NCBI GenBank assembly: GCA_047495785.1
Contig: JBLDXI010000019.1
Location: 62,001 to 126,000 of the forward strand
Reading direction: 5' to 3'
DNA from: Lepidodermella squamata
Taxonomy: Eukaryota > Animalia > Gastrotricha
Length of the DNA: 64,000 nt
In this document: positions 24,690 through 62,968 of the stretch, piece after piece
How the letters are laid out: each line of letters begins with the position of its first letter
Numbering within the stretch: the first letter of the stretch is position 1
Made by a program: the position numbers and the translations under genes
Notes under the pieces: model-generated
What the model saw: the letters and a program-made list of their open reading frames with translations, nothing else
The model's database searches: none
Told to the model about the DNA's origin: nothing

Positions 24690-27600
24690 ATGATTGGCTG
24701 TCTACAAGTTGGACCGACTTATTTCCTGATCCTAACGCTGGTTGCGCTGGCTAAAAACGCGTTTTCGGAAAATGTAAGTTCATGAAAGTACGAAAGGAGT
24801 ACTAATCAATATGGGTTGGTGAAAGTTTGCGTACCTACATAACTCATCGAGATCTATTCCCAGAAAAATCAGCAAGTTCGCAACCCTCACAGTTTGGGAG
24901 ATGCGCGTGGTGTTCAAATTAGTACCTGTTCAAAATTGTACCGGAGTACGGTAGAGAATTTATTAACGAGCCAAAACTAAAACGTAAAAAAAACGTGACA
25001 TTTAGCAGAGCGTAGTTTCGATCTACAGACCTCTGGGTTATGGGCCCAGCGCGCTTCCACTGCGCCACTCTGCTTGTCTGAATTTAATCGGATTTCCTCA
25101 TATTATCAAACAACTTGGCATACAAAGACTCTCCTATCCTCATCAAGAGACCCCCAAGACCACAGTCCCCCAAAGACTCACAGGGAATTCAGGAATTCTG
25201 GTTTTGAGCAATTGCACACATCCTTGAACCTTTACCAGCTTGAAGCTCGTGCCCAAATGGACCATCTTCTATGAATTCCACGAATTTCACATCAATAAAT
25301 GAAGTTTTCATCTGACCCACCTTTGGCTATTATGATATCTACTTTGAGGAGAACTAGTAGTGGATCTCGAAATATCTGTGAATCTACGAATTTTACAGTC
25401 CGGCTCAGTAGCTTAGTGGTAGAGCGTCTGTCTCGTAAACAGAAGATCGCGGGTTCAATTCCCGCCTGGGCCTAGTCTCTCTTTTATACTCCCTACTAGA
25501 AATATCAAGAGTGAAACAAGCAGACTTGATCATGTTTACTGAAGCTTCTAACGGCTGGAAGCAGTGGCGTGCTTCTGTAACTCAGCGACTTGAGAGCCGG
25601 GCTTGGCGAATGGGTGGCCGGTGGGAGCCCTGTCTGCGGATGTCACATGTCGATCGAGCGCCCCGTGTAAGTACGCCATCAACATGGTCGGTGCGGCGGA
25701 GGCCGTACTGCCCAGGTTGCGTAATGACACGTCAAAGGTCAGGTCCTGACGGAAGCAGCCTAACGATGTGCGTGGTGAGCGGTACCGGGACAGTGCTTGT
25801 GAATGTGCGCCGTAGTCAGCCCATCGGTTCACGCGGACCCAAATCTTTTTTTCTAATTTTTTCTAATTTTTTTAATTATTAAATTTCGTTGTTACTTATT
25901 TATTTTTTTATTTATTTTTTATTTTTTTAGATTGAAGGCTGCTCGTTGCCGAAAATTGAAAACGGCGCTTTGACTAACTTGAATGGCGAAAAATATGTCC
26001 TTCCTTCAGCCCCTTTTGACGCCCGGCTGCGAATTGCCTGCAAGCGAAATTTCGTTGTCCGGGGCTGGGGTCAATTTGTCTGCACCCGATCTGGCCGCTG
26101 GTCGCCCGAACCCGGTGACTGCAAACCCGGCCGGCGCCAGACCAGCTACCCTGAGGACTATCGGTACCACGTTGCTGAGTTATGGCTCAACAAAACTGTA
26201 TCCTACGAAATATCGCCGGAATTGAAGTCGGATTTCGCGACTAGCATGACGCAGGCGATGAAACTTGTCGCAAGCAACACCTGTCTATCTTTTCGTGATA
26301 TCAGCAAGGATCGCCTACCCGACGGCCTTGTTCGAATCCAGCCGGATGACAGTGGCAGCGAAAGGTGCTCAGCCTCGTTTGGCAAGGCCCCCGAAGGCCG
26401 GCAAACCATCGATTTAGCTTCCTCTTGCTTCTCAGATTCAACCCAAGTTTATTTTACGCTGTTATCAACTATCGGCCTCGTTCAGGAACATCGCCGACCT
26501 GACCGTGATGACTACATTGAAATAGTTTGGGCTAACATAGCTGACAACGCGAAATTTTTGTTCGAAAAGCATCGAATAATCGACGAACGAATCGCAGCCT
26601 TGCCATATGAGTTCTCGTCAGTCATGCATTTCTCTGCTACGGAGTATGCTAAATCGCCAGGTCTCGTGACGATTCGACTGAGAAACAGCACGCAGTCAAG
26701 GTCGTTTGGCGGCAAGGTTCCTACCAAAACAGACTTCGATAAACTTAACGCTCTATACTGCGCTTCACCCCGGAATGATAACGAAGATCTTGGTACCTCA
26801 AGATCGCCAGTATTGCTAGCTGGAATGTCCTCAACGAGCTCTACTGTAACATCGACTACTACTACAACTACCAGGCCAACCACTACTACTAGTACTACAA
26901 CTACCACCACTAGGCCAAGCACCTTGAAAGTTGAAACCACGACCTTGAGAAGTACGACTACAACCCCAGTGCCAACAACTGTTCGATCGACTGCAGCCGC
27001 GACTACGACCTCGGTACCAACAACTGTCCGATCAACTTCAGCCGCGACTTCAACGGCAAAATTGACCACAGTTAGAATCCCTGAAACATCACTCGCTACA
27101 TCCTCTGTTCGGCTCGTTACGAATCAAACTCAGACCACGATTCTGCCACGAAACGGCTCAGTTACAACGCTGAAACCCACGATAGCTAGTACTTCGACGA
27201 TGAAGGCTGATGTTCCTTTAACTACAGTCAGGGCAATTCTTACAACGGTTTCGACTTCGCCGATGACTTCCACTAGGCCTTCTTTGCCATTGACAACAGC
27301 TGTAGTTACCAGCAGAGAGACTGAAACTTCTCGTCCGCGAGAAAACGTGACAACTAACTTAGTTCCTACTACGGTTGTAGGCCCGAGAAGCAACTATAGC
27401 ACTACGATTTCGGCCAGTTCAACCAAAGCCCCTTCTATGTTGACTACTAGAAGCTTCAGGCCTGATAATTCAACAATTAAATTTGAAAATTTTACTACAG
27501 CGAGCTCGGGAAATTTCATCAATATTACGACCAAAGCATCTCCAACGTCATCAACTCGATTTTTCGGGTTAGATATTGCAAATCCTGGCAATTCGTCAGC

Positions 27601-29446
27601 CACGACAAAAGCTGCTTTGATATCAACGCCCAGACCTGATAATGTCACAGTAATTGTGACCACCGCCGCAAATAAAATCTCAACAAAAAGTCCTGAGGGT
27701 ACGACCAGAGCATCTTTATTGTCAACAACTGCAAGCTTCAGCCTCAACAATGCGACCACAGCTTCTCCAAACAGGGCATTGAACCTTTCGACAACTTCAG
27801 CTGTTCCAGTTCGGACTTCAACTTCAGGGATTTCGACAAATGCCACCACTTTGAGAACTACGCCGATTACTACAACAACGACAAAGGTTAATCTTACCAG
27901 TCAAAGTCAAATGACAACAACGTTGAGGACTACAGCTGCCGTGCAAAATGTAACAACGACACCGTATTCCAGCACCGTATCCTTACTCTCAACAACCGGA
28001 AGACTCACCATCAATAATGCGACCATTAAATTCGAAAATTTAACGACCACGCCTTCGCCAATGCGGGCGTTTAACTCTTCGACAACTTCTGCTGTAACAG
28101 TGCGGGCTTCGACTTCAGGCATTTCAACAAATGCCACTACGTTGAGTACTTCAAAGCCTATGATGGCTACTACTACGGCAAAGGCTAATTTTACCATTTT
28201 GAATGTGACCAGTCAAGGCCAAGTGACAACAACGTCGAGGATCGCAACAACAAGCACTACGTTGAGGATTTTAGGCTTTATTTCAGCAAATGAATCCAAT
28301 CCGGAAGTTATTAACGCTACTCAGAGCAATCGAACTACTTCGAGATTGATTCCCAATTATTCTTCTACTTCCGCTCCAGTGAACGTTTCAGCAACTTCAA
28401 TGGGAACTACAACTTCAATTATTAATATTGCCAATTTAACGACTACTAATAGACGAAATTCATCAGAGCTAATGACTACGGCATCTCCCAGAAATTCTAC
28501 AACAACCCTCTATTCCGGGTCTACGTTTAGGATTAACGCTACTCTGGACAATCAAACGGCTACGACCACTATGGCTCCTCCGAAAAATTCAACGGTTTGG
28601 CTGAACCAAAATAATACAGTAGTATCGGTCCTGGAGCGAAAGCGAACTTCTCCCTATAGTGCCACTACATCACGAGCTGTAGTAACCACCCAAAAATGGA
28701 GCAATCTCACAAACATTTCGGATGCTACCATTGGAACATCGAAGTCTGTTTTGCCGCTTATTAACGTAACAACTTCTGCTGCTACTACAGCAAGGACGAT
28801 GACAACGATTCCGCCACGTAAAACGAGTGATTTGAATTCCACAATATCAAATGCCACAAGAACTCTGATACCAAGTCTTGCTACGAATCTTACGGGGCTT
28901 GATTCAGTTGGCAATTTTCGAGTTTCAACCTCAAAGCCTGCCAATCTTACGTTGAATCAAACAATCGCTGTAACTACATCAGTCATTATTCCATCAACAA
29001 CAGCTCGACCTTACTTCCCCAACCTAATGACAAACGCAAGTGTTGGCTTGACGACTCCGACTTCAAATTATTCGAAGCTGAATAGCACTTCCGGACTACG
29101 GCAATTTAATTCTACGACACTGCCTCCCATGAATAGAAATGATAGTATTGTTGGAGGCAATGATGAACTTCGTAACAAATCAAGTTCTAGTCTGGTCACA
29201 CGGCTGAATTCCAACTCAACTAATGTTCTACCTGTTACGACCATGAGCCCGAATAGAAACATGACTTTGGCTTCTCTGGTCAACTTGATGAACTCGACGC
29301 GAATATGGCTGGCTGGAGAAACAAATTCGACCTTGGCAGTGAAGATTCCGATTTCGAGAGGATACAATGAAACTGTAACTGAGAGAATTCTGTCAAATAA
29401 TACAACGGTCGCTAGTGAGAATTTCACATTATCTGCTAGATTTTGA
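24690..29446 (+). CDS. Secreted Sushi + inactive astacin-like + long Ser/Thr mucin protein (exons 24690-24773, 25931-29446)
   Basis: Signal-peptide exon ends AAT|GTAAGT; acceptor TTTTAG at 25930 in frame with 1166-aa ORF; EHRRPDRDDY, SVMHF; ~890-aa T/S-rich tail. Confidence 0.9.
25003..25074 (-). tRNA. Initiator tRNA-Met(CAT)
   Basis: AGCAGAGTGGCGCAGTGGAAGCGCGCTGGGCCCATAACCCAG...GATCGAAAC; A1:U72, three G:C anticodon-stem pairs, eukaryotic initiator T-loop. Confidence 0.97.
25357..25382 (+). promoter_or_regulatory. Conserved motif upstream of tRNA-Thr (also 49487-49512, 53112-53137, 59047-59072 on minus)
   Basis: GTAGTGGATC-x-AAATATCTGTGAA-like, at -45..-20 in all four cassettes while flanks diverge; function inferred. 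Confidence 0.5.
25402..25473 (+). tRNA. tRNA-Thr(CGT), cassette 1
   Basis: 72-nt cloverleaf; anticodon arm TCTGT-CTCGTAA-ACAGA; GGTTCAATTCC B box. Confidence 0.96.
25553..25846 (+). ncRNA. RN7SL: 7SL / SRP RNA, cassette 1
   Basis: ~294 nt; Alu 5' domain with UGU turn, TAAGTACGCCATCAACATGG, helix 6 with GGAG loop, CCAGGTTGC, helix 8 CAGG...AGCA, TGTGAAT, oligo-T terminator. Confidence 0.93.
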
Positions 29447-31685
29447 AACTAACTTGCGGTATAGAAAATTTTCGGTATTTAAATAAATATTTTTCTTCTT
29501 TATTACTTGTATTTTCGAGAAATAATTTCCTGTGGCTTTGACCTACTTTGCATTCGCATTGAAAACAGAAATTTAATTGCTGGATTGCGTTAATTTTCGC
29601 CAAACTGCGAGATGACCCACATTATGCAGGTCACGAAATTCTACCATCATTAAATTATTCACTGGGACTGAGGGCCATTCCAGTCCGTGTCTATGAACAC
29701 TCGTCCCAAGTTCCTCAAGATAATTTTTTCACGCTGAGCCTAAATTGAAAGGAATGTGCTCCGTGACTTTTCTTTAAAAAACGAAGAGCGACGCTTTATG
29801 ATAGCAACGGTTGCCAAGTTGCTGAAAAACTTGATTATTTCGCTTCCAATTTTTCTCCTCGGCGATGTGTCATGGTAAAGGCATTTTAGAAAATGGAGCG
29901 ATGGTGTTTGAAATCCTGATGATGCCCGAAATTATTCCCCATAAAGGCTGAATGACATACCTTTTATTCGAGTGCTTTGTATTTTCAAATTATTCATCGT
30001 TGCTGAGCAAATAGCAGCAGTATTTAGAATTTCCGGCTGAAATTTGCGGCAGCAGACAAGAGCTCGCAGTGTAAATCGCATACAACAACAATTCATATGC
30101 ACAGCTAAATATTTTGTTTTTGTCCACTTCATTACTCGAGATTAATGATAACATTTTTATTAGGCGCATCGAACCAGGTTTTGAGTCACCCCGCAATTGC
30201 AGCAGGATGCGCAGCAAACGATGCTTGACTAAATCGCAATAAAATGGAAAAGAAATCACGGGAAAAAGATACAACGAAACAATGAAAATCAATATTTGTA
30301 GGCCAAACAAAGGAAGCCGTATTGCCAAGTACTACTCGTCGGTCAAAAACAGTCGAAATTGCTTGTAATTTCCTGCCGCATTCTGTATTTTCATTACAAA
30401 TACATAATATAAATCTTACCTTTTCACTCTTACAAATAGTTTGTAAAAAAAACGCGACATTCTATTTTGCACTTTCATAGCGGAAAAACAATCAATTAGT
30501 TCGCGGCTAAATGTTACCAGATAGCAGCCCAGCTTGTAAATGTATCATGAGAATTTTATTAAATTATTAGATCGCGAGTAATACGATCGTTTTTTTCGCA
30601 ATGTGATAAGTATTGTTCGTAATGAAAAATATTCGAATTATCGATCATTTTTATTGTCCGACAAACACACTCCAGGGATCAAATGGCTTACAATACTGTA
30701 GAGCTGAAAATATTTCACAGCAAACATCCTCATGGATTTTTCGCGCGCGATACACACGCGTCAATATATATATGTCGAAATTTCTATGTTTTCACTTGCA
30801 ATCTACCCTATCCTCATTTTCGATGCATTTTTTAGTCATGCGTGAGAGAAACAAGGCATAATTACACATGCCACGCTATGAATTTTAGGAAATTATAGCA
30901 CCTGAGATGGTTTTTTTTGTATTTTAGACCTCTTTAATGTATCAATTACCAGCACGACCGGTTTTTAGCTCGCAATAACAACATCGCAATACCGGCAATT
31001 ATCGAGTGTTTTTTCCGTCCGTCAAGGCGAAGAAATTCGGCGGCGGGTGCGAAGTCGTTGGAGAAAAGAGCGGCGCTTGTGCGCGCACGGTGCGCGCTTT
31101 CACAACGCGCTGTATATCGAAATAATATACCACGCGCGTAAAAACACACACACAATCACCAAGTGCATGCAAAATTTCGCAAATGACGGCCGCTCGACGT
31201 TCGATCAGTACGCTGCTAAAAACAAGGCAAGTGTATTCGATAATTATTGCCCATATATATTTTTTCAGTTTTTTCGCAGCGCTATTTATTGTTTGAAGTA
31301 TTGTTATTATTACTTTTTCCGCCATTATAATAGCCGCCTATACCCGAACCGCCCTGGCAACCAGCGCGCAACCAACCGCGGCGAGTAAATATTACTTACA
31401 TAGATGACGCGCGACGAAAGTTTGCCTTTTATTATTTCGAACTGTGCACGCGCAGCCACGCGGCGCTCCCTCGTCAATAATGCGATTCGGCGTGTCCTCC
31501 TCCATAATATTATTCATAATCCGCCATTGTAAATTTGTAGGAAAAAAAACCGCGCGCCATAAAGGAACGGCGCGCAATTCTACCCGCGCCTCTCGTTGTC
31601 ATTTTTGAAGACGCGCGAGGGACGTTGCCGCTTTAAAAAAATTTGAATTTTTTATCACTTCCTCTGTCGAAAAAACTCGACGGCC

Positions 31686-33893
31686 ATGGCCGATAAAGTC
31701 GAATTCGTGAAACAGTTTTGCGAAAGCAAGGGCAAATCGCTGATAGAAAGTGCAAGCAACGCGCTGCCCGCTTCCATTAACGGGTCTATTTCGAACGTCA
31801 TAACAACGGCTAATAACGTTATTTCAAAAACGTCTAGCCGCGAACGCCTGGCGATGCAGCAGGCCGAGTACGGCTTCAAGGTCGTCATGGTCGGCGATTC
31901 GGCGGTTGGCAAGACGAGCGTGTTGAACCGGCTGACGGAGAATTTTTTCAACAACGCTTTCACGCCGACTATCGGCATTGATTTCAAGCTGCAAGTGTTC
32001 AGCATCGATGGCAAGAAGGTGCGCCTGCAAATTTGGGACACGGCGGGCCAGGAGAAGTTCAAATCGATAACAACGAGTTATTACCGAAGCGCTGATGGCG
32101 TTATACTCTTCTACGACGTCAGCGATCGCCGGAGCTTTCAAAACATGGAGAATTGGATGAAATCTGTTGAGGAGGTGGGTTACGCCTACCCTAAAATATG
32201 TCAGTTGTACCTAATTAATAATTGATAATTATTTATAGTGCTGCAGTAAAACTGCCGTTAAAATGGTGATTGGCAACAAATCCGAGCTATACGAAACCCG
32301 TCAAGTGCAGCCTAATGAAGGCAGAGCCGTGAGTATTTGCTTAAAATTAAATCCTAGGTTGAATCTTTTATTATCCGAGGATTTTGATTAGGTCGCGTAA
32401 ATAACAAGACAGCAAAATTGATCTCAAAATTTTCAAATGGTTTTGATTATATAATTGCCCTTTTCTGGTCCTTACCATCATTTCCCCTGGAACTCGGAAT
32501 TTTCAATTGAAACAAGCTGGGCAAACCCTAAATTTACGGTTCCAGCTGTCGGTCCAGCTGTCCTCATTGGTTTTCTATACTGGCAGTTTAGAAACCTTGC
32601 TGAAGGTTATTCTGAAGTTTCGCGAGATCCAGGTGGAACAAAATATCATAGGGATCGTTGTGATCGATTAGGACAGAATAGCAAGCTACCCATCCTGATC
32701 GCCTGATCTCAAAACCTGCCCTTTAACGGATATTTCAATTTCCCCAAAATAATCATGAATTTTTGTCACCAAGCAATTTCATCCGGGGCCAGGGCCTCCT
32801 TTTTGATACACCTTAATTTTGGTCGCTCTCGAGGTCTACTCCAAGTATCATCCGGCGGCATCGCATCTGGCTTGCCAACCTTACGGTTTATGCTCAAAAT
32901 TAGGTATTTGACCTACTTATCTTGTATACAAGATATTCTTCATTTCGGGTCTCATGTCGATATAGGAAAAAATCATGAGTGAATGATTTAAATCGATAGA
33001 TGAAATCAGCTCCCAGGCTGAACTATGGCTTCTAATGAACCGGCCTTCGGAAAGTTCAAGGGTTCACCAGAGCTAAATTCTGCAGATATCGTTGATTGGG
33101 AGCTTCGAAGAAACGAAGGGAATTATTTGTGGGGTATTTAGCCTTGAGGTGCGGCGACAAAACAGCAACTTCGCGAAACAGCTAATGCGACAAAACAGCA
33201 ATTTTTTATTTCGCGACAAAACAGCGAAAACTTAATATGTAAAAGATGCATCGTGTTTCTGCTGTTTTGTCGCGTTTGCTGTTTTGGGTATTTGCTGTTA
33301 TGACGGTCTGAAGTATCGAATTTGGGTAACTTTTAGGCTTTAACTTCTTTAAATTCTTTAACTTTAACTTCTTGGACTAGTGTGCTTAAAAATTGCAGTG
33401 AAATTTCCGAAATATATATTGAAAATCATAACATTCTGTAAGATGAAAAGGTACTAATGAGAACAATTTTTCCAAGTAAATTTGCAAAATAAATTGAGAT
33501 TTTGTCATTTTAATCTGTTTTTTCATTTCTGTTTGAAACGGGTTGACATCCATTGATAGTTTATAAGTGCCTTTGTACCATCGGTTTCATCTAAATTCAA
33601 AGTCGAATAAATCTGACGGTGCTAGGAAACAATTTACTCAGTGAAAAAGTCTCATGCCCGAATTTGTATTTATCTTCCAGTTTGCGAGCGAGCATGAAGC
33701 TATTTTCTACGAAGTGAGTGCGTCGACGGGCGTCAACATCGCTGAAGCTTTCACGGAGATAGCGCGGACTTTGAAACGGCGGCGCGACTCAGCCCAGGCC
33801 GATGGGCCCATCGCCATCGACAATGCATCGGTTCTACTCGACGAAGCTGACGTGCAACGAAATAAATTAACAAGTTGCTGCAAATTTTTATAG
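31686..33893 (+). CDS. Rab GTPase of the Rab8/10/13/15-like group with N-terminal extension (exons 31686-32174, 32239-32328, 33681-33893)
   Basis: GDSAVGKT, TIGIDFK, LQIWDTAGQEKF, YYRSADG, GNKSE, EVSAS, C-terminal CCKFL. Confidence 0.92.
33153..33300. repeat. Intronic GCGACAAAACAGC direct and inverted repeats (MITE-like relic)
   Basis: Three direct copies, then inverted GCTGTTTTGTCGCG and partial copies. Confidence 0.6.
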
Positions 33894-35150
33894 CTATATT
33901 TATATGATATCAATAAGTTATGCGTGCAAAATTATGGCCGTTATTTTTGTTAAATCCAGTCAGCCTCTCTCTCCATGATGTTGTTTCCAATCGCAAAACG
34001 CATTTCATCATCGAAGCAGAATGTCGAAATTCGAATTGACCGTTAATAATTCATAAAAATAGCTGCGTCTTATGTGTGCTAAAAATGTTTATTTTGGAAC
34101 GAAATTGTTGAAAGAAATTCGCATTTTACTGCCTTTAATTTTTCGCCGCTCCGTCACGATGAAATTTGAATAAAAACATAACTTCAAAAATCAACTTTGT
34201 TAGATGCTTTTCCGGATCTGAAGTATTTTTAGGGTTCCAACACTAATTTTGAGACTACAGCGCTAGATTTCCACTAAATATGGTTTTTCGAGTTTCACAT
34301 CTTCACTAGAATCTAAATTTTCTGCTGTCAAGCCTAGCCGATAGCGTATTTCGCGCTATAAGTTGTCAGTTTACGAGTGATACTTCAGCCAGCAGAGCCG
34401 TATTCGATTCAAAGTATCGGTTTTACAAATCAGTGATTTTTCCGATATCAGCCGTCTTGGAACCCAACAAATTCTCTACGTAGCTTGGGGCGCCAGGTAG
34501 GTGACATAAGAAATCCTAGGTTCAGGGAGGTTTCAGTATCGATCAAAGAACGAAAACGCCGAAATCGTAAAGAATCTGAAAATATATCGCTTCAATTTAG
34601 TGTTGAAACCTCATTTTTAGTTAGGCAATTATTTTGACCCAGTTTTTTTCCAGCAGCTTTCATGAGATCCGAAAGCAGCCTAGGACAGAGGTGAGGGGCG
34701 TCACTTGACGGAAAACTTAGTTGCGAATTCAGACCATCTTGAAGCCAGGGATCAATTGCAATTTAAGTAAAAAATATCGATAAATCAATCAATCAAAAAT
34801 CTGAACAAATCAATCCTGAAATATCTGAAATCGCCATATTCTTCAGCACCATCGATTTACTAGTAGTTCTAGCCCATTTCGGGTACTCTGAAAGACTTCT
34901 GCTTGAAAGAGGCATCGAAATTTTCAGTGCATCGGAAAAACCTTTGCCCATATGGCAGCCCAAATTGACGATATTAACCACATTGGCCAACCCAATTGTC
35001 AAACTGAATACACATGGGTTTTCGGCCATGGCGAATCTTTATTTTTCAAAATCAAGACATCACCAACTATCACGGTTCATAAAAAAGCCATCAGAAATAT
35101 ATTAAAGTATGTAAAAATCGATAAATCAATCACCGAAATATTATCGATAA

Positions 35151-47100: not shown

Positions 47101-48970
47101 CTTCTCAGCCTCATGTACTGGAACTCGCCAATTCCGTTGAAGCTGTACTCGGTTGCGCCCAGCGTTTTGAAGTGACCCGCGCCTCTCGTGTAGGATTTGG
47201 GCGGTGGTGGATAGCGGTGGCATGAAACAGGCTTGTAGATGTCCTGGAAAACTTCGCACAGATCGGCGAAGGCACAGCACGACGTCTTAAGGCGATAGAA
47301 GTCAGCCTCGTAACCTTTAGGAACGATACCACCTGCGCCTGGTCCAGCAGTAACTAACGCGCCCGCCCTGAACAAAAAACAGCAATAAACAGGATCTTAT
47401 ATGAACTTTCGTTTTTCACTCACTTATCGTAGCAGCAATAGGCACGAGCCATATAACTCTTGTCTTTCCTCTCAACCCAGTTCGAAAACCTAGAAATGTG
47501 GCAAGAGCTGATGTGGTCAGGTTGAAATTCAAAGTTGGCTGGCAGGTAGTGCGTGTCAGCGTAGGCTTGTTGTTCGATGCAGGGGCAAACAAGGTCCGGA
47601 TCTTTCGAGTTACCTTCCTCGTCCACGGAAACGACACCGAAGTCGCCATGCTCGGCAAACTGCTTAGCAGCTTCCTTCATGCACACGGGATTGGAGTCAC
47701 TGCTAAACGGTGGGCCGAAAACCTTATAAATACGGCCACGCTGTGTCAGGAAAGACATCTTTGCGCAAACATTATCTATGTAAAATGGATCTTGGAAAAG
47801 CTGATTGACATAGTCGATGGGTTGGCGAGTTGCCGAATTTTCACCGGCAAAACCGATGTAGACGTTTTCTAGTGGGAGGGTCCATTCAGTCCATTTCGGA
47901 TCTTCAGCGTAAGACATGAAGCCGAACGAACTAGCTCCATCAGTCACAAGAACGGCTTGGAATGTGATACGTGACTTGTCTTCAGGTTGGAAGGTACCCG
48001 GGGCCTGGACATCAACCCAAGTTGCGATGATTAGTTGAGTTGGATTGAAATCAGGAATGTTTATTTCATCAACCCATCCGTAGAATTTTGGAGTTTGCTT
48101 TCTCATTTCACTGAAAGTTTTCACGTCTTCAGATCCCGTATTTCCGTAGTAACTGATATGGTCAATGAACAAGCCAGAACCAGACTTTTTAGTCGGCTCA
48201 AGATCAGTCCAGAACGGCGCGACGAACTTGATGAAACGATGAGTTGGGAAGGCGTCTCCACCTAAGAAAGGCGCGGCACGAGTTTCGAAAGTTATCAGCC
48301 CATCAAAATGAATGAAGATGTCAAAGAAGAGATCGCCGAAGTATGGGAAACCTCCAGGCACTTTAACGTGAAGAATGTCATCGCCTTTGTCAGAGAACTG
48401 GGCGTCCGAGATGTTGTACTGAATGATCGAGTCTGGGTAACAGGTTTTGCCGTCTCCTAAATAGCCGAAGCCATCGATTCCGGGGAAGTCTTCAGTGCTA
48501 TAGCAACACTGGCAGGAGTAGCTGCCGACTTTGTTCGTGCATGAGGCATACGGGCTGCAGACCCGCTCTTTACATTCGTCTTTGTCGACGCACAGCCCAA
48601 CCTCACTCCATTGATAGCCTTCGGCGCAGGCACATCTGTAGGGATCTTCCATCGATGGCTTGTCCATGCAGGCAACCGCGTTCTCCGAGCATGTCGTATT
48701 TCCAGTGGTGCAGTAGCTTATGCAGTCTTTGCCGTCGCCGGAAAAGCCGCCGTTGCACTTACACTGAACAACGCTGAGATCGCACTGACCGAAATCTGAA
48801 CAGCCTTGGTTCGGCTTGCCAGGGTCGCATATCACTACAGAAACGAATCAAAGCATTTTTCTATACTTAGATTATAAAACTGGAGGTTTACAGTCTTGCG
48901 CCCGAATCGCCGTAAACATGCAGGCTGACAGCAGGAGACAAATGCTACTGCTGCGCGTCAGCCGCTTCAT
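35151..48970 (-). CDS. Giant single-pass MUC4/SUSD2-like protein, roughly 28 short introns: signal peptide, three [EGF-NIDO-AMOP-vWD-EGF-SEA] blocks, EGF repeats, TM, short basic tail
   Basis: MKRLTRSSSICLLLSACMFTAIRA; APFWTDL / APLWADF NIDO motifs; CCY AMOP motifs; GDPH; cbEGF DxDEC; WSSELANPSSQEF SEA; TM IIVGVVSGSACLVLILVILGCIFLV. Confidence 0.9.
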
Positions 48971-49411
48971 CAATAATATGTCTCTTAAAATCTATCCTAA
49001 GAAAGTTATTCATGAAGTTGGTTGACTCTATTCGAAGTTCGAAGAAGCTCTCGGATTTAGCAAATCAATTCCCTCTGTTCGAAGTAATTTTGACTTATCG
49101 GGAATTGTCACCAAGCATAAAAAATGTAAATAGCACTGCACTACTGTTTTTTATCTCTCTAATGAGTTGAATTTCTCAAGACGATCGCTTATCTCTCTGG
49201 CGCTGATAGTGCTTTGTTCATAGCAGGCATGGTACCGCCAAGTACCAACCCTGTGACATTTGGAAGCAAACAACACCTATTTTTAATTGCCACCAAATTG
49301 TCGCAGCAGCAACCCGTTCCATGCATCTCTGATGCGTTTTATGAAAGATAATTTATTACAATCTGTCGTACAGGGTACAGGGCATGGATATTACTTCGAA
49401 ATAATCGATCA

Positions 49412-49458
49412 TTCCTGTTGGTCTGGTGGTTGGGATTCCGCGTTCTCACCGCGGCGGC
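49412..49458 (+). pseudogene. 5' fragment of tRNA-Glu(CTC)
   Basis: TTCCTGTTGGTCTGGTGGTTGGGATTCCGCGTTCTCACCGCGGCGGC resembles the tRNA-Glu 5' two-thirds; T-arm and 3' acceptor strand absent. Confidence 0.75.
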
Positions 49459-49531
49459 TATTATGATCCCTACTTCTCTAGACGTTGTAGTGGATCCCAA
49501 AGTTACTGTGAATCTATGAATTTTCCTCTCA

Positions 49532-49603
49532 GGCTCAGTAGCTTAGTGGTAGAGCGTCTGTCTCGTAAACAGAAGATCGCGGGTTCAATTCCCGCCTGGG
49601 CCT
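49532..49603 (+). tRNA. tRNA-Thr(CGT), cassette 2
   Basis: Same sequence as 25402-25473. Confidence 0.96.
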
Positions 49604-49682
49604 AGTCTCTCTTTTATACTCCCTACTAGAAATATCAAGAGTGAAACAAGCAGACTTGATCATGTTTACTGAAGCTTCTAAC

Positions 49683-49976
49683 GGCTGGAAGCAGTGGCGT
49701 GCTTCTGTGACTCAGCGACTTGAGGGCCGGGCTTGGCGAATGGGTGGCCGGTGGGAGCCCTGTCTGCGGATGTCACATGTCGATCGAGCGCCCCGTGTAA
49801 GTACGCCATCAACATGGTCGGTGCGGCGGAGGCCGTACTGCCCAGGTTGCGTAATGACACGTCAAAGGTCAGGTCCTGACGGAAGCAGCCTAACGATGTG
49901 CGTGGTGAGCGGTACCGGGACAGTGCTTGTGAATGTGCGCCGCAGTCAGCCCATCGGTTCACACGGACCCAAATCT
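49683..49976 (+). ncRNA. RN7SL: 7SL / SRP RNA, cassette 2
   Basis: Near-identical to 25553-25846; oligo-T terminator. Confidence 0.93.
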
Positions 49977-50493
49977 TTTTTCAGGATTTTTATTCAAATT
50001 ATTCATTCGAATTTTTTAGTTTAATTTCAACTTAATTTTGTTGGAAATATGTCTGCAGACTCCAGACGTAAGTGTCCATGGGGGAAATGCTAATAAGTAT
50101 AGCGGTGAAGTAGGGTGGCGGTATTAATGTCTGGCAGAATCGATTCACGGACGCGTTTTCAATGGAATAAGCCCAAGTGGTGAAATGGCGGAAACTAGGA
50201 GAGCCAATCTAGCTAATTGAATACATATGCTGAGCATTGCTTAAGTCACCGTAATCAGAGTTAAATTGAGCTGCCTGCTACCTCCTCTTAGCACTTTCAC
50301 GATTGATTCTCTCCGATGATATCTACATAACATAAAATGCAAGTCGAACTTATACTGTCGTAAATTGGAATGGAAAGGACAATATCCGTTTTTCATTACG
50401 AAATGCTTTCGTCAAAATGCTTCATCAAACCCCAATAGGGTACAGACATTCAACCGCAAAGAAGTCTCAAATCAGTCTCAAGTCTCAAAAGAA

Positions 50494-52827
50494 ATGTTTT
50501 TACTTATGAAAATGATTATCGTCTTAGGCCTTCTCTACCTAGCTGAGGCCGAATCCCAGAAACATAAGCTGAGGATGTTGGCACTGTGGTGGCTTCCTAG
50601 ATACCCAGCCTGCAATGCTACCTTCCAACTACTAATGGACCATGCCAACAATCGAAGTGACATTCTACCCGACTACGATCTCGAGCAAGAAGTTCGAGAT
50701 CAAGGTCCAGCTAATGCGAACATCATCAAATTTTTCGAGCAAACACTGCCCCTAAACACCTACTTCGCACCGATAATGACTGGCCCAACTGGAGACTGCA
50801 ACTACAACGCCTTAACTTTGAAGGCACTCGGAGTCGCTGAAATCACAAATGGCTGCTCAGGCCCGTTGATATGGTCAAGAAGGAAGAGTCTTTACGACAA
50901 TTTATTCGTGACAACAATGCCACAACTTCGCTACGTTGTCGCTGTTCACGATATCATTACAAAAATCGGAAAATGGCAGCAGGTTTCGATTTTTACAAGC
51001 TCATACAATGGCAACAACTACATGACGGCTCTATCAATTCAATCCTACGTCAATTCACGAGGAATCGACGTGGTTCAATTTCTGAATATTCACTGGTTAG
51101 AGGATGTGGATAGCGTAACAGTTGCAGCTATGCTCCCGAGTAGGATTATCATTGTTGCCCTTATTTCTGGTTACGACTGCCAGATCTTTTTATGCGCCGC
51201 TTATTTCGCCGGTATCAGACCTCCCTTATACGCGTTTATTGGTCTTGGAGATGGCTGTTTCACTCTAACTTTGAGCAATTCGACAATATTACCAGGGACC
51301 TGCCAGGATGATAGGTCTGTTATGCTTTTCCAACTTAAAGGCCTGTTTTCGGCCGGATTGTCCACAAGTGGACCTGGCTCGAATGTTAAAACTACCTTCG
51401 GCTACACGATCGCGAATTTCGATCAATCTTTGAGAGCTTTTACGGCGAATAAAACCGACATTTCATTCGATTATGCATCGCGATACACCTGCCATGACGT
51501 CATCATGCACGCGATATTGACACTGAACGAGTCTGATACGGTTTTGAAACAGCAATATCGTCTTTCTTTAAAAGACTGGAGCACACATCGAGAAACAGTC
51601 TTCAAGGTTGTCAAGGACGCTGCGTCGAACCTTAAATTCGTTGGTGCGAGGGTGGGACGCTTGACCTGGGACGAAAATGGCGAACTCAATGAAGACATGT
51701 TTGTAAAACAGGTCGTTGGAAGAGAAATTCGGTCGATTGCCAAATTAGAGTACAATGAAAACAACACCGCTTCAGGGCATCAGGGCGTCTACAGCTTCAA
51801 GTTGATTGAACAACCAGTTTTCGCTACTCGCTCCGGAGGACCCCCTAAAGATTTGTCGGCGATCGAACGTAGGATCGCTCAATGCGGTGATATGTTGATA
51901 ATTTCTAGCTTAATCGTAGCTGCGCTAGTTTCCATTGCGCAGATCGGCGTTTTCTCGAAGTCTCTTATGAATGGCGCGAAGGTTGAAGGATACCAGCTGT
52001 TTTACGGGGTTAAGGCTAAAACTGGCGTTTTGCTGGCGCTTCTACTTACAAATGCATCCTCTGTTCTCATTTTAGTTGGGGCTGACTACTTTCCGGCGAT
52101 AGAATGTCAACTGAGACCTTTGTTTGCTGCTTTGGGACCGAGTTATTTACACAGCTTCCTTGTCAGTCTCTTATTGACCTTCGCGAAATTCTTTACCTTC
52201 AGACGAATACGGCGAAGAAAAGCCTTCATTGTTGCTAGAAGAGCACAGTCATGGGGCATTATCCCTAAGTCCCTAACAATGGACTTTGAAATTACATCGA
52301 ATCCTCGAAGAACCGTTCGACAAGTAATTGCTGTTTTCGGCATTATTTTCCTGCCTTGTGTGTTTAATTTGATTGTGTGGATATCTGTTGATAGTTTGCT
52401 GTTGCGACTGTCAACATCCGAGACAGCGTTTGACGACGAGGGCGATACCTATTTCACTGTCACGTGGCCCGTCTGTGGTTCCGCCAATGGAAAATTCTGG
52501 ATTGCAGCTCTTTCAGGTTACCATGCGTTTCTACTTGTTCTCGCGAATGGAATATCTCTTGGGTTGCGCCGAAAATCTTTTCCGAGAGTTGTCAAGTTCA
52601 GCGTCCGCTTGTTTCGGCTAGCTTCGCTAAACGCACTAGGCAATTTGGCGGCGATTGTTTTAATCATTTCAGTCCTCTCAAATTCGAAGATTCACTGTGT
52701 TCAACCGGCCATTATTTGCTTCGGCTTACTGACTTACTCGCTTATTACCGGTCTAATTTTGTTGTTTCCTCACCCACTGAGCAATAGAAGACTGCACCAC
52801 AGGAGGTCGGCGATAGTTCCTAACTAG
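50494..52827 (+). CDS. Class C GPCR, GABA-B-receptor-like, intronless
   Basis: Signal peptide; Venus-flytrap motif NNRSDILPDYDL; PPKD linker with no cysteine-rich domain; seven hydrophobic segments ending LLFP. Confidence 0.85.
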   Translation: MFLLMKMIIVLGLLYLAEAESQKHKLRMLALWWLPRYPACNATFQLLMDHANNRSDILPDYDLEQEVRDQGPANANIIKFFEQTLPLNTYFAPIMTGPTGDCNYNALTLKALGVAEITNGCSGPLIWSRRKSLYDNLFVTTMPQLRYVVAVHDIITKIGKWQQVSIFTSSYNGNNYMTALSIQSYVNSRGIDVVQFLNIHWLEDVDSVTVAAMLPSRIIIVALISGYDCQIFLCAAYFAGIRPPLYAFIGLGDGCFTLTLSNSTILPGTCQDDRSVMLFQLKGLFSAGLSTSGPGSNVKTTFGYTIANFDQSLRAFTANKTDISFDYASRYTCHDVIMHAILTLNESDTVLKQQYRLSLKDWSTHRETVFKVVKDAASNLKFVGARVGRLTWDENGELNEDMFVKQVVGREIRSIAKLEYNENNTASGHQGVYSFKLIEQPVFATRSGGPPKDLSAIERRIAQCGDMLIISSLIVAALVSIAQIGVFSKSLMNGAKVEGYQLFYGVKAKTGVLLALLLTNASSVLILVGADYFPAIECQLRPLFAALGPSYLHSFLVSLLLTFAKFFTFRRIRRRKAFIVARRAQSWGIIPKSLTMDFEITSNPRRTVRQVIAVFGIIFLPCVFNLIVWISVDSLLLRLSTSETAFDDEGDTYFTVTWPVCGSANGKFWIAALSGYHAFLLVLANGISLGLRRKSFPRVVKFSVRLFRLASLNALGNLAAIVLIISVLSNSKIHCVQPAIICFGLLTYSLITGLILLFPHPLSNRRLHHRRSAIVPN

Positions 52828-52914
52828 GATTTAAACGAATTTAAACGAATTGATTACTTCAAGGATGGCTAGTTCGTAGTGGCAATAGAAGAAATTATTT
52901 AAGAAAAGGATAAC

Positions 52915-52986
52915 TAGCAGAGCGTAGTTTCGATCTACAGACCTCTGGGTTATGGGCCCAGCGCGCTTCCACTGCGCCACTCTGCT
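52915..52986 (-). tRNA. Initiator tRNA-Met(CAT)
   Basis: Same sequence as 25003-25074. Confidence 0.97.
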
Positions 52987-53155
52987 TGTCTGAGTTTGAT
53001 GATGCCTCCTTAACTCACAATTCACAAAATTTTAAATTCACATTTAGCAGCATCCGATGTTTTATCCAAGTTTTGATCACAGCCACCAGTGAACCTATTT
53101 GAGTAGACGTTGTAGTGGATCCCCAAATATCTGTGAAACTAGAATTGTCCAGCCC

Positions 53156-53227
53156 GGCTCAGTAGCTTAGTGGTAGAGCGTCTGTCTCGTAAACAGAAGA
53201 TCGCGGGTTCAATTCCCGCCTGGGCCT
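53156..53227 (+). tRNA. tRNA-Thr(CGT), cassette 3
   Basis: Same sequence as 25402-25473. Confidence 0.96.
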
Positions 53228-53307
53228 TGTCTCTCTTTTATTATCTTTGCTCCGAAAATTCATGACTGAAAAAGAAGGGATTGAACATGTTTACAGAAGC
53301 TTCTAAT

Positions 53308-53601
53308 GGCTGGAAGCAGTGGCGTGCTTCTGTGACTCAGCGACTTGAGGGCCGGGCTTGGCGAATGGGTGGCCGGTGGGAGCCCTGTCTGCGGATGTCA
53401 CATGTCGATCGAGCGCCCCGTGTAAGTACGCCATCAACATGGTCGGTGCGGCGGAGGCCGTACTGCCCAGGTTGCGTAATGACACGTCAAAGGTCAGGTC
53501 CTGACGGAAGCAGCCTAACGATGTGCGTGGTGAGCGGTACCGGGACAGTGCTTGTGAATGTGCGCCGCAGTCAGCCCATCGGTTCATCTGAACCCAAATC
53601 T
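53308..53601 (+). ncRNA. RN7SL: 7SL / SRP RNA, cassette 3 (3' variant TTCATCTGAACCC)
   Basis: Near-identical to other copies; oligo-T terminator. Confidence 0.92.
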
Positions 53602-53863
53602 TTTTTCTAATTTTTGAATTAGATTCAAATTACCTATCAGCTACCAAGTTTATATTTTCCGTCTTTTTTAATTATTGAAGTTGTGCGTCATATGAGTCCA
53701 ACGTTTTGAGGGCATTACAAAGTCAAGAACGATCATTGATCGCGCTATGAGATGAGATTTTTAAATTAAAATAATTCTTACATCACGATGAGAATAAAAA
53801 GGTAAAAGGAAATTAAGAGTTGTATAAACACCACTGTTGTTGATGGCTGAACAAACAAGCCGG

Positions 53864-55356
53864 CTAGCCTATGCGAATGTCAGACTTGATAGATACATAG
53901 AACAGAACGTTGATGCCGATGAAAACAAACGAAATGACGAAAAATAAAACGGTATCCAACAGATCGATCAACCGTGTTCCAGACTTGATGCAAATGCAGC
54001 AATTCGACTTCAAGCGTCGAGCCATGGTGTCATCCTCGTTATTTGTCAGACGAAGCATTGTCAAGCTGTACAGGGTTGTTAGTACGGCTGTTGTTAGCTG
54101 AGCTCCGAAGTACATATCAATGTACAGCACCTCAGATGTCATCGGCAATTTTCCCGAGAAAATACTTTGGAAAAAGGCAAAAGCAAGGAAAACTGTCATA
54201 GAAAACGCCGCTCTGTCCGTTGAATTAGAAGGCAGCAATAGACTAGCGACTTCGAGAATAGCCAGCAGTGTTGTTGGTATGAAAATCGGCGCGATGAATG
54301 TGTCGTGTTGACGGGAAAAGATGAAATTGAACGTTAGTTCGCCATCATCGATTTCGAACAGGTGGAAATCTACGGGGTTCCAGCCAGAATTTTCGAAAAT
54401 TCTCGCAAACTCCCTGTTCTTTGCATTGGCGGCCAAACTAAGGTCCCTTTTCAGCTTAAATCCGACTCCTCTTATTGTGATGTTACACGACTGGGTATCG
54501 AAGGGATACTTTTGAAAGTTTAGACTGCAAATGGAATCGAATCGACCGGCTGCCATCCATGAGGCTCGGCCATCACTCGCGAGCGAGACAAAATCGCCGT
54601 ACCTTCAAATACGCATTACTTTTTTGAACAAATGAAAGAATACAGTTACTTGGTCATTGAGTTGTCGCTTGATCGAAAATTGGAGTTGACATGCCTAACA
54701 TCAGGCTGCCAAACCAATTCCTTCGTGTACATACACGTGTTAATTGTAAGGCTAGCGGTATTATTTGTTGCATTCCACTTTGCGCAGTTGCCCCAAACCC
54801 AGCTGAAGTTGAATGATGCGATGAGCCTGAATCTGTAAAATAAATATTAGGATGCTATGATGGATCAGCAATTCTTCAAAGCTAACTCTTGGTCCATATC
54901 GCTTAATCCTATGAAGAGTTTGGGCTCGAAAGACACGGATACGTTTTCCGGCACGTTTGGGCTAACATCGGAAAAAGCGGCGTGGTATGCCATAACCACG
55001 CAGTTTTTCGCCAACTGTTGGCAAAACAAGTCTCCAGCATCCGTCGGTTCGTTCGGGCGCCCTGATTGCGAAGCAGACCCTGGTGCATTACGGCCAACAG
55101 CATCAGGCGGTCCTCCATTCTGGGCACCCCCTGTGTTTTGATCTTGGCCCGAGCTATTGGGTGGTGTACCTCCGGTTCCTGTGGATGTATCTTTGCCTGA
55201 GGGCATGGGTTGGTTCCCAATGTTAATTGCCGTCCCAATGGAGGGACCTTGGCCTGATGAAGACTGTCCTGCACCCGGAGGGCCCCCGAAAACTTGAAAT
55301 TTGGCTGGTGATACCTGAAGAAACATCCCCAAGAGTAAAAAGTTGATATAATACAT
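53864..55356 (-). CDS. Divergent Cys-loop ligand-gated ion channel subunit (exons 55356-54887, 54832-54650, 54602-53864)
   Basis: Signal peptide; VWQPDV; Cys-loop CSLNFQKYPFDTQSC; M1-M4 pattern including LPxNSTDR and LPMTS. Confidence 0.9.
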
Positions 55357-55960
55357 GATGGAATAGAAAGCAAAATCAACTCAGGTGAGGCTTCGAAACA
55401 TGAGTAAACCAACATGAGAATATTGAAAGTTCGCATGGTATTTGATTCGACAGGATATGAACCCACCATTGGCAGCCGGAAATGTGTCAATATTTTCAAT
55501 TTATTTTTATCTCAGGATTAACGCCGTTTTTTCTGTTTTAAGGAATAAGTACGCCGTTCTCACCTTATACCTTTTTCTCTGGCCGTCTCGGCCACGAACC
55601 AGCGCTCGTGATTTAGGTTCAAACCTCCTCAGGGCAAAATACGAAACTCGATGCAAAAAATAACAAATGCTGATAACGCGATATCGAATTTCCTCTATTG
55701 CCGGGTCGGAATAATTTATGTTAAATAGCTAGTAAGCGAGCTAAGCGGGCTGATTAAACATGAAAAGCGATAAGCGTTACACTTGTCGATGATTTTACCC
55801 CCACTCGATTGGCGGAATAGGCGTGTCGCCGTGCTGAATCAATGCATTAGACGACAGTTACGACAACCGGCACGCCCAAATTCATATATAATAGCCCAGG
55901 TGTGAACACGGGCCAGGCTATCACATCGCTTTATTTTCCCAATTAACAAGCTCAACAATC

Positions 55961-56877
55961 ATGATGGTTAAACAATTTTTCACTCGTAAGCCTTGAGCTG
56001 CATTAGTTTCCAACTAATTTTATTAAACTTGATTTATTTAGTTGCAGTTTTCGCTGCAATCTATGTTTCCTGTCAAGCAGCCGATCCGCCGTCGATGGAC
56101 AGTTTGGTCGGTTGGTGGCCATTCGACGCGACGTGGCAGATGAAGGAGAGGAAAAACAACGTAGATGCAACCACTGTATTGAAAGGCGTCATTTCGACGG
56201 ATAAAGGCCCTTTCGACAAGGAGTCGACCTCTTTCACTGTGTCAGAAGACAACGCTAACATTGCGACGTACACCAACCAGGTCATTGGTTCGGATACTGT
56301 GACCTTTGGATTTTGGTTGAAATCGAAAATTGCTCAAGCTGGGGGAATTTTCGCCGCATCTGATGCAACCGGAACAACGTCATTCAGTTATGACACAACC
56401 GGAGCTCTAATTGTCACTCAAAAAATCCTCGACCAGTCTTACACGCTTGTTAAAAAATGGGATGGTGCTATCACAGCGGATACTTGGAAATACTTTGCGT
56501 TCTCGATTACGCCCAATTCGCTGTCATTGTATGACGCGGATGGGAAGAAAACTGAGACAGTGACCATTGCTGCTGGTACCTTTGACAAATTGAGTGTCAC
56601 ATTTGGCCAGGGTTACACGGCTGTGGATAACACTAAGCTTGGAATGTACAAGACTGATGCGATCGCATGCGCTGTTCTTTACAATTCGGGGTTGTCGACT
56701 GCAAGCATGGCCAAATTATCAGCGGTTTGTAACGAAGCCACCGACCCGACTACTGCTGCTCCAACTCAAGCTGCGACAACCCAGGCCGCAGCAACCACGA
56801 CGAATGCAGGTTCATCTTGCGTTCCAGCTGTGATTGTACTAATGTTCGCGTCGATTGCTGCTACTTTCTTAAATTAG
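55961..56877 (+). CDS. ConA-like lectin/glucanase (LamG-type) surface protein 1, possibly GPI-anchored (exons 55961-55985, 56042-56877)
   Basis: Signal peptide; LVGWWPFD, TFGFWLK, WKYFAFS, LYNSGLS; Thr/Ala stalk; hydrophobic C-terminus. Confidence 0.8.
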
Positions 56878-57566
56878 AGAGAAACATTCAGTGTGCGATG
56901 TCTGCTTGCTTTGTTGCGCTAATTACTCCTGTTCGTTGAATAATGGAAAATAAAATCCGCAATAAAAGCTAGTAAATAACAGTACTTTCGCCAAGATTGA
57001 TTAGGAAATCGGGGCAGTAGGCGATGCAGACTGCACGTCAAAAAATATCCGCTAAAAGGGGAACACCCTCTTGTTGCAAAACCTTCCAGAAAAATCTGAT
57101 CGATTCCTGTTTCCATTCGACAGAACAAACTAACTGAGGGATGCAAAAATCGGCAATATCCCACTCGACAATATATTTTACCGGTTCTCGGTATAAGCAA
57201 CGGTCGCTTTAAAAACCAGCAACTTCGCACAGCCAATCCTTCTCCAACTATGCAAACTCGATGCTGATCAGAGCCTCAAGATGGGGGCTAGGTTTTCGGG
57301 CAATCAGTTTGGTCTGAGTTCAGACCCTACATATGCTCGAAATAAATTTGTACATTTGGGTATTTTTCTCACCAAAAAGGTAAGCATTATTACTCAATTA
57401 AAGAGTCTAATTTTATTCGACATTCGTTTTAAATTAGGATGACATGAGGATGCAGTCTCACATCTCACCGTTCCCGATGATAACGCACAGTAACGAAAAA
57501 GATAACGAGTACATGAGACGTTGCCGTACCAGGGTAGTTTGTTTTTCCCAATCCCAACACCACCAA

Positions 57567-58458
57567 ATGGCTCATCAAAAACTACTGTGTATGTTTTTCA
57601 ATTATGAGAATTTTGATTGAACTCAAATTTAAAACTCCAGGTATCATTGTGCTGTTCGCAAATGGTGTGTTAGGCTATGACCCCCCGGTTTCGAATAATT
57701 TAGTTGCGTTCTACCCTCTTGACAAAACCTGGCAACTGAAAGACGCTAAAACGGGAGCGGCGCCTGTGGAAACTTACGAGGCGATACTAAATAAAGAAAA
57801 TGGACCTTTCGGGGAACCAGCGACATCGTATGGAGTTACTTGCGAGGGTTGTAAAATCGCGAGTTACCACGTTGTTGGCATCAACTCAAATTCCATAACC
57901 TTTGCTTTATGGACGAAAAACGTGGCGGGGAAAAGCGCTATTCTTTATAGCTTTGACAATAATGGAAAGATATCCCTTCACTTTGACGCGCCGGACGCTA
58001 TTATTGTGACTCAAAACATCGACGAAAGAGGTCCGCGTGAAATTGCTCGGTGGAACAACAGCATCGATGTAGGAAAGTGGAATTTTATTGTAGCTTCCAT
58101 CACGCCCGGAAATATCAGTCTGTACGGGCAGTCAGGGCAGCTGTTAGAAACAGCTTCGATAGCAACAGCTTTCATGGTTTATTACAATTTGACTCTTGGC
58201 GAGGCGTTAGGCATAGCCGATGGTGATTACTTAGGAATGGCGAAAAAAGATGCTCTAGCTTGCGGATTGTTGTATAACGTGGCATTGTCGAATACGGAGA
58301 TCGCGGATTTAGCTTATGTTTGCAAGCCCAGTGATGTGGAAACGACGACACCAGCCAGAACTGTGACAACGACTGGAACCAACGACGGGCCTGTGATCAA
58401 AAGTGAATGTGTACTGTTTGCCATAGTCGCAGCTTTTCTCCACGTTATGGTGAAATAA
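57567..58458 (+). CDS. ConA-like/LamG surface protein 2 (exons 57567-57588, 57641-58458)
   Basis: LVAFYPLD, TFALWTK, WNFIVAS, LYNVALS; same phase-1 intron and architecture as the paralog. Confidence 0.8.
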
Positions 58459-58582
58459 AGGCTAGCTAAATAAATAAAAGTGACTCGGTTATGGCAATTT
58501 CTCTTCATTTCAGAATAAAACCTTCCTTAGCTAAGGTAAGATTTTTTAATTCGTAAAAAAATGAAAACGTGAGTACGAAAAA

Positions 58583-58876
58583 AGACTTGGGTCCGTGTGG
58601 ACCGATGGGCTGAATGCGGCGCACATTCACAAGCACTGTCCCGGTACCGCTCACCACGCACATCGTTAGGCTGCTTCCGTCAGGACCTGACCTTTGACGT
58701 GTCATTACGCAACCTGGGCAGTACGGCCTCCGCCGCACCGACCATGTTGATGGCGTACTTACACGGGGCGCTCGATCGACATGTGACATCCAGAGACAGG
58801 TCTCCCACCGGCCACCCATTCGCCAAGCCCGGCCCTCAAGTCGCTGAGTCACAGAAGCACGCCACTGCTTCCAGCC
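58583..58876 (-). ncRNA. RN7SL: 7SL / SRP RNA, cassette 4 (most divergent copy)
   Basis: Reverse complement of other copies with a few substitutions; oligo-T terminator. Confidence 0.92.
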
Positions 58877-58956
58877 ATTAGAAGCTTCTGTAAACTTGTT
58901 CAATCCCTTCATTCTCAGTCATGAATTCTCGGATTAAAGATAATAAAAGAGAGACA

Positions 58957-59028
58957 AGGCCCAGGCGGGAATTGAACCCGCGATCTTCTGTTTACGAGAC
59001 AGACGCTCTACCACTAAGCTACTGAGCC
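58957..59028 (-). tRNA. tRNA-Thr(CGT), cassette 4
   Basis: Reverse complement of 25402-25473. Confidence 0.96.
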
Positions 59029-59077
59029 GGGCTGGACAATTCTAGTTTCACAGATATTTGGGGATCCACTACAACGT

Positions 59078-62867: not shown

Positions 62868-62968
62868 CCGTCGTTTCCTACTGGTATAGCATTTTGTCAT
62901 CAAGTATGAAGATGCAACAGAACAAATACGTAGATGTTATCACGTCGCCTAGATGACAGAATCTTCAA

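Follow-up and report, generated by a model that had tools for sequence, protein, structure and literature searches.

The window analysed here is a stretch of 64,000 nucleotides (nt) from the gastrotrich Lepidodermella squamata, positions 62001-126000 of contig JBLDXI010000019.1 (C19) in an assembly of 121 Mb, and it holds four cassettes of RNA polymerase III (Pol III) genes in which a tRNA-Thr(CGT) gene is followed on the same strand by a gene for 7SL, the signal recognition particle (SRP) RNA. The tRNA genes were called with ARAGORN and Rfam, and the 7SL genes with the Rfam Metazoa_SRP covariance model (RF00017, gathering score 70). ARAGORN finds six tRNA genes within the window, namely four tRNA-Thr(CGT) and two tRNA-Met(CAT), and the four 7SL genes are all full-length, matching positions 1-299 of the 299 in the model with 173.5-181.8 bits. 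Each of them lies 80-81 nt downstream of an intact tRNA-Thr(CGT) and is closed by a run of six or seven T (Table 1). An earlier note on this DNA, made from the letters alone, had described just this layout of tRNA-Thr, spacer, full-length 7SL and T run in four units, with an initiator tRNA-Met (iMet) head-to-head with units 1 and 3, and both the layout and the identity of the 7SL element are borne out by these searches. Eukaryotic initiator tRNA-Met is marked by the anticodon CAT, an A1:U72 pair, an anticodon stem whose lowest three pairs are G:C, and A54 and A60 in the T-loop. Read from their sequences, the two tRNA-Met genes of the window have A1:U72, close their anticodon stem with three G:C pairs and carry GATCGAAAC as the T-loop. 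The conserved flank immediately upstream of the tRNA-Thr of the units, which the note had called a motif, is absent upstream of those solo tRNA-Thr genes that were compared genome-wide.

Table 1. Parts of the four tRNA-Thr/7SL units, in order along the window
Feature	Position	Strand	Basis and remarks
Initiator tRNA-Met(CAT), head-to-head with unit 1 (327 nt to tRNA-Thr)	25003-25074	-	ARAGORN; Rfam, 55.2 bits; initiator hallmarks
Conserved 5' flank of unit 1 tRNA-Thr	25346-25401	+	Only in the type A cassettes of C19
tRNA-Thr(CGT), unit 1	25402-25473	+	ARAGORN; Rfam, 74.8 bits
Spacer, unit 1, 80 nt	25474-25553	+	T4 run at 25482-25485; block conserved over about -31 to -1 of 7SL, no TATA box
7SL, unit 1 (type A), with T run	25554-25852 (Rfam 25554-25848)	+	181.8 bits, model 1-299
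Truncated tRNA-Glu(CTC)-like 5' fragment upstream of unit 2	49414-49458	+	Without T-arm or B box
tRNA-Thr(CGT), unit 2	49532-49603	+	ARAGORN; Rfam
Spacer, unit 2, 80 nt	49604-49683	+	With T4 run
7SL, unit 2 (type A), with T run	49684-49982 (Rfam 49684-49978)	+	180.4 bits
Initiator tRNA-Met(CAT), head-to-head with unit 3 (169 nt to tRNA-Thr)	52915-52986	-	ARAGORN; Rfam
tRNA-Thr(CGT), unit 3	53156-53227	+	ARAGORN; Rfam
Spacer, unit 3, 81 nt	53228-53308	+	With T4 run
7SL, unit 3 (type A), with T run	53309-53607 (Rfam 53309-53603)	+	179.4 bits
7SL, unit 4 (type A), with T run	58577-58875 (Rfam 58581-58875)	-	173.5 bits; one broken pair, 81:262 C-U
Spacer, unit 4, 81 nt	58876-58956	-	Sequence
tRNA-Thr(CGT), unit 4	58957-59028	-	ARAGORN; Rfam

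Genome-wide there are 22 full-length 7SL genes (161.6-183.3 bits with RF00017), and since 25 candidates were scored and three failed, this count is probably near-complete. Fifteen of the 22 are linked to a tRNA gene, always on the same strand, 13 of them to tRNA-Thr(CGT) and two (loci L008 and L009) to tRNA-Glu(CTC), a tally that may represent fewer independent loci, as cassettes on separate contigs could be allelic or homeologous. The remaining seven are solo, since neither ARAGORN nor a permissive Rfam scan finds a tRNA inside 1.5 kb of them. The claim that neither 7SL nor tRNA-Thr occurs without the other is therefore correct inside the window but does not extend to the genome, where linkage of 7SL is the majority state and not the universal one, and where most of the at least 40 identical copies of tRNA-Thr(CGT) lie away from 7SL. 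A divergent iMet gene accompanies 10 of the 13 Thr cassettes at a distance of 169-327 nt, but iMet is likewise present in at least 40 identical copies, of which the majority are found away from 7SL. The notion that the cassette couples the supply of initiator tRNA, tRNA-Thr and SRP RNA, which was also put forward in the earlier note, consequently finds little support.

The distance between the tRNA and the 7SL gene amounts to 67-81 nt in all 15 linked cassettes, and the spacers fall into three classes without detectable mutual homology: a main Thr class of 68-81 nt (z of at least 5.6 within the class), the Thr spacer of L011 with 71 nt (z against the rest no higher than 2.7) and the Glu spacers of 67-72 nt (z of at most 2.5); the spacers of L008 and L016 measure 72 and 72 nt. 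This gap is the usual spacing of adjacent same-strand Pol III genes in this genome. In a tally of 37 distinct same-strand neighbour pairs of tRNA genes at tRNA-Thr and iMet loci (L023-L082), 26 have gaps of 65-89 nt, and these include such different combinations as Leu(TAG)-to-iMet, Lys-to-Ala, Arg-to-Lys, Gly-to-Gln and Gln-to-Ala. At least 15 copies of the Leu(TAG)-to-iMet pair are present, their spacer measuring about 70 nt, and arrays of seven to nine different tRNA genes occur as well, for example at L063, L065, L070 and L074. At L009 a tRNA-Thr(TGT) gene (2034-2105, minus strand) is furthermore found about 100 nt upstream of the same-strand tRNA-Glu of the Glu-7SL cassette, making this a three-gene head-to-tail array.

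A run of four to seven T (T4-T7) begins 2-13 nt past the tRNA in every one of the 15 linked cassettes. In the Thr cassettes it starts 9-13 nt after the tRNA and is a T4 in 11 and a T5 in two of them, and in the Glu spacers a T6-T7 is followed by five more runs of at least four T, six in total. Such runs are a general property of tRNA 3' flanks in this genome, as in 119 of 120 distinct flanks a run of at least four T is met within 60 nt (median 9 nt); the first such run is a T4 in 24%, a T5 in 41%, a T6 in 25% and longer in 9%. A T run also stands a few bases ahead of 7SL in L016 (T5, -8 to -4) and in L004 (T4). The 7SL genes have the same start context, ATG followed by GCTGG, in 20 of 22 cases whether linked or solo (L007 and L021 have TTG), and the 12 homologous Thr spacers have kept a block of sequence at about -31 to -1, which is the position expected of a promoter element. 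Since there are T runs after every linked tRNA, since the start context is common to the solo genes, and since the conserved block sits where a promoter would, we conclude that the tRNA and the 7SL appear to be separate transcription units.

The explanation towards which we lean, with slightly better than even confidence, is that these are compact cassettes of separate Pol III units which would have been copied as DNA, and in which the tRNA possibly lends some help to the 7SL. Within a unit an outward-pointing initiator tRNA-Met comes first, and tRNA-Thr and 7SL follow head-to-tail. The internal A and B boxes would drive transcription of the tRNA, which would end at its own T run 9-13 nt downstream, and the 7SL would start independently some 55-70 nt beyond this terminator, using the conserved spacer block just upstream together with elements inside the gene. 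Internal box-like words can be picked out in the 7SL of unit 1 (A-box-like at +51, B-box-like at +99), but they are given no weight here, as the word at +51 is lost in the type B genes described below and lies inside a helix. Judging from Pol III footprints, the genes probably could not be packed more closely than this gap of 67-81 nt while still accommodating the upstream terminator and a downstream TFIIIB site. The neighbouring tRNA might then assist in loading Pol III onto the 7SL, either by way of its bound TFIIIC and TFIIIB or by handing over the polymerase after termination, and such assistance need not be essential.

That the tRNA may help the linked 7SL genes is proposed because these genes are without the TATA box that solo genes carry, and the fact that three unrelated spacer classes all measure 67-81 nt is likewise in its favour, as is the sequence constancy of tRNA-Thr in 12 of 13 cassettes. 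TATAAAA with at most one mismatch is found at -31 or -29 in 5 of 7 solo genes as opposed to 0 of 15 linked genes; a sixth solo gene has a TATA-like sequence, the 13 Thr-linked genes have no TATA box, and the two Glu-linked genes are merely A/T-rich at this place. Two observations do however weigh against the explanation given above. Counted by independent lineages the TATA contrast comes down to about three of four solo against none of three linked and is thus only suggestive, and 11 of the 13 Thr cassettes have nothing but a T4 after the tRNA, the weakest class of terminator here, with most of these spacers containing no back-up T run.

A stricter version of tRNA help is that the tRNA would be an essential external promoter, such that TFIIIC bound to the upstream A and B boxes would be required for starting the TATA-less linked 7SL. 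This would make the cassette an animal analogue of the trypanosomatid system, arranged in tandem instead of divergently, and we regard it as a tentative possibility that is clearly less probable than the compact packing of separate units. It is in agreement with the consistent orientation and the majority linkage of the 7SL genes, with the missing TATA box, and with the occurrence of two different tRNAs, Thr and Glu, in one and the same position. The B box of the tRNA is moreover placed at -89 to -103 relative to the linked 7SL across the three non-homologous spacers, and the A box at -132 to -146. The tRNA is intact in 14 of 15 cassettes, and tRNA-Thr is 100% identical in 12 of 13 despite diverged spacers, whereas the tRNA-Glu upstream of the U6 genes has decayed in several copies. 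The only damaged tRNA in the 15 cassettes is the tRNA-Thr at L014 (1354-1423), with a deletion of 2 nt beside the anticodon loop.

The stricter version also draws on what the 7SL genes lack. The 28 U6 genes (L085-L112) and the genes for RNase P RNA (L083) and MRP RNA (L084) have in common, at about -74, an octamer-like element (ATATGCAAAT with G or T, then AG) and, at about -30, a TATA-like box; RNase P and MRP carry the element, and nearly all of the 28 U6 a variant of it. Most of the solo 7SL genes resemble these type 3 promoters in having a TATA at about -30, but no 7SL has the element at about -74. Indeed none of the 22 7SL genes has the octamer ATGCAAAT, looked for on either strand and with one-step variants on the same strand, in the 500 nt ahead of it, and a canonical type 3 promoter for 7SL is thereby ruled out. 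Surroundings similar to those of 7SL are nevertheless met with at U6. In six of the 28 U6 genes an undamaged tRNA on the same strand (Ser, Gln or Glu) stops at -111 to -198, shortly past the octamer. Seven of the 28 have a B box on their own strand, where shuffled sequence would lead one to expect 0.3, and the opposite strand has none. Of these seven boxes six lie at -128 to -139, some of them inside decayed tRNA-Glu fragments, and several further U6 genes retain just such a fragment with the B box still at this distance. A wider proposal, to which we give a similarly modest chance, is that tRNA genes or surviving B boxes might act as same-orientation upstream promoter or enhancer modules, which would be needed by TATA-less 7SL and would boost some U6; they would then form an independent counterpart, in another orientation, to the companion tRNAs of trypanosomatids, the sole system of this sort that the literature search turned up.

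Several facts nonetheless argue against the tRNA being essential. Ordinary tRNA-tRNA pairs, which need no external promoter, show equal spacing, and U6 genes with complete promoters are equally associated with tRNA genes, and for these two reasons tRNA-7SL linkage and its regular spacing can arise in this genome without promoter dependence. Furthermore, TFIIIC normally places TFIIIB upstream of a tRNA gene, so that in the tandem arrangement the factor would be set on the side facing away from the 7SL, and the tRNA may also persist simply because it is a working tRNA gene.

If the T4 after tRNA-Thr were weak enough for Pol III to pass, a dicistron would result, from whose tRNA-spacer-7SL precursor the 7SL would be freed by RNase Z and 5' trimming. 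The earlier note had entertained such a unit, and it is not upheld by the spacers; we consider it improbable. To our knowledge no 5'-processing route for 7SL has been described, and the T runs present in all 15 spacers, the T5 directly ahead of the 7SL in L016, the start context shared by linked and solo genes and the conserved block at the promoter position all speak against it. Because of their six T runs, a dicistron is unlikely in the Glu cassettes in particular. What can be said for it is the prevalence of a lone T4 in the Thr cassettes and the behaviour of Pol III in other systems. In human assays T4 terminates efficiently and read-through was "very poorly represented" in vitro, but some read-through occurs in human cells in vivo even at T5, and dicistronic Pol III units do exist, such as the plant tRNA-snoRNA genes and the tRNA-like-pre-miRNA genes of gammaherpesvirus 68 (PMC3141230). 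In these, as in the present cassettes, a tRNA is followed by another small RNA in the same orientation; they have, however, no effective terminator between their parts, whereas a T4-T7 is found in each spacer here along with the block at the promoter position. Read-through in the Thr cassettes, whose T4 lies at the weak end for this genome, would be a minor route at most.

The 7SL genes themselves fall into sequence types, the two main ones of which differ by 5-6%. Type A comprises seven copies, all of them tRNA-linked and all on C19 between 47 and 150 kb, including the four of the window, and is recognised by positions 53, 61, 83-84, 195, 259 and 286. Type B is made up of eight tRNA-linked copies and three solo ones, and type C of three solo genes on C42 that have a TATA box and are told apart by positions 58, 62, 139, 144 and 154, and a single divergent solo gene is found at L021. 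Compensatory changes of base pairs are seen among these paralogues, namely 53:286 from C-G to G-C (seven copies), 139:154 from U-A to C-G (three copies) and 7:20 from A-U to G-C (one copy), and a compensated pair is among the differences between the two main types. Since compensatory changes separate the types, the comparison indicates that the linked and the solo lineages have both evolved as functional RNAs under structural constraint. Between the solo L012 and the Thr-linked L001 only position 280 of the 7SL differs, although from -4 upstream the two have unrelated flanks, a pattern suggestive of gene conversion restricted to the transcribed part.

It could also be argued that the linked 7SL genes are largely redundant passengers, that the solo genes with their canonical TATA boxes make most of the 7SL, and that the cassettes have been amplified in the way of tRNA blocks, amplification of Pol III cassettes being widespread in this genome. 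Single broken pairs are indeed confined to Thr-linked copies, where 5 of 13 have one (unit 4 among them) as against 0 of the 9 others. This leaves 8 of the 13 Thr-linked and both Glu-linked copies without a broken pair, however, and the compensated change at 53:286 belongs to type A, which consists of linked copies only. The terminators, the start context and the spacer block have been kept in the linked copies as well, and largely redundant linked genes therefore appear a poor prospect to us.

As to how the cassettes multiplied, some 55-85 nt upstream of the tRNA-Thr are conserved together with the genes among the four units of the window, and the whole of unit 4 is an inverted copy of 509 nt of unit 3, with 96% identity and sharp ends. 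On account of the co-conserved 5' flank and this sharp-ended inverted copy, the comparison points to a cassette of about 0.5-0.75 kb that would have spread through the genome by copying as DNA. No A-rich tail follows the window copies, which end in the T run, and target-site duplications were not looked for. The co-copied non-transcribed flank and the lack of an A-rich tail rule out retroposition of the cassette as a short interspersed nuclear element, in keeping with the earlier note. The Glu-like fragment upstream of unit 2 is mutated, sits where the other units have their iMet-side sequence and abuts the conserved 5' flank of tRNA-Thr, and this junction suggests recombination between Glu-type and Thr-type cassettes at 49414-49458.

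Elsewhere in the window there is a partial iMet copy at 62960-63011 (minus strand) which, apart from three mismatches, follows the intact gene as far as the beginning of the T-arm, beyond which the likeness is lost, so that it represents a broken gene without a B box. No open reading frames of at least 120 amino acids are found within 59100-64000. The neighbouring genes are animal genes, for an astacin, a NIDO/EGF protein and an ANF-type receptor.

Among known systems the closest likeness is to the trypanosomatids Trypanosoma brucei, Leishmania and Leptomonas, in which 7SL and snRNA genes have a companion tRNA that is divergently oriented, with its box A about 104-106 bp upstream, and in which dependence on the A and B boxes was shown by mutation (PMC4950102). 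As in the present cassettes, a tRNA lies there within about 100 bp upstream of 7SL at a conserved distance, and different tRNAs serve (PMC4950102). The cassettes described here differ in that the arrangement is tandem in 15 of 15, with the B box being the nearer of the two, and in that 7 of the 22 7SL genes have no tRNA at all; this is a resemblance and does not imply membership. The other obvious comparison is with tandem tRNA arrays and Pol III clusters, with which the cassettes have in common head-to-tail genes, short and regular spacers and amplification in blocks, the difference being that the downstream member is a 295-nt 7SL and not a tRNA. The literature search for a tRNA-7SL arrangement, or for 7SL as a regular array member, in animals including rotifers yielded the trypanosomatid precedent only, which agrees with the supposition of the earlier note that the arrangement was undescribed in animals, and scans of metagenome contigs with a 7SL 5' pattern and with a tRNA-Thr 3' half, gap and 7SL motif gave no match. 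The linkage of tRNA and 7SL in this animal is thus real and undescribed in animals, and it follows a general tight head-to-tail packing of Pol III genes.

The promoters of 7SL are known to vary with lineage, as mammals use internal and upstream elements, plants an upstream sequence element and a TATA box, and trypanosomatids companion tRNAs. The genome of Lepidodermella squamata offers a natural experiment in this respect, since genes for one and the same RNA stand after tRNA-Thr, after tRNA-Glu and, without any tRNA, after a TATA box, and the diagnostic letters of the 7SL types would let RNA reads assign the output to each type of promoter. If the tRNA turned out to be necessary, Pol III promoters carried by tRNA genes would have had two origins, here with a new geometry, and if it did not, the very regular packing of Pol III genes at 65-89 nt would still bear on how TFIIIC, TFIIIB and a terminating polymerase share space.

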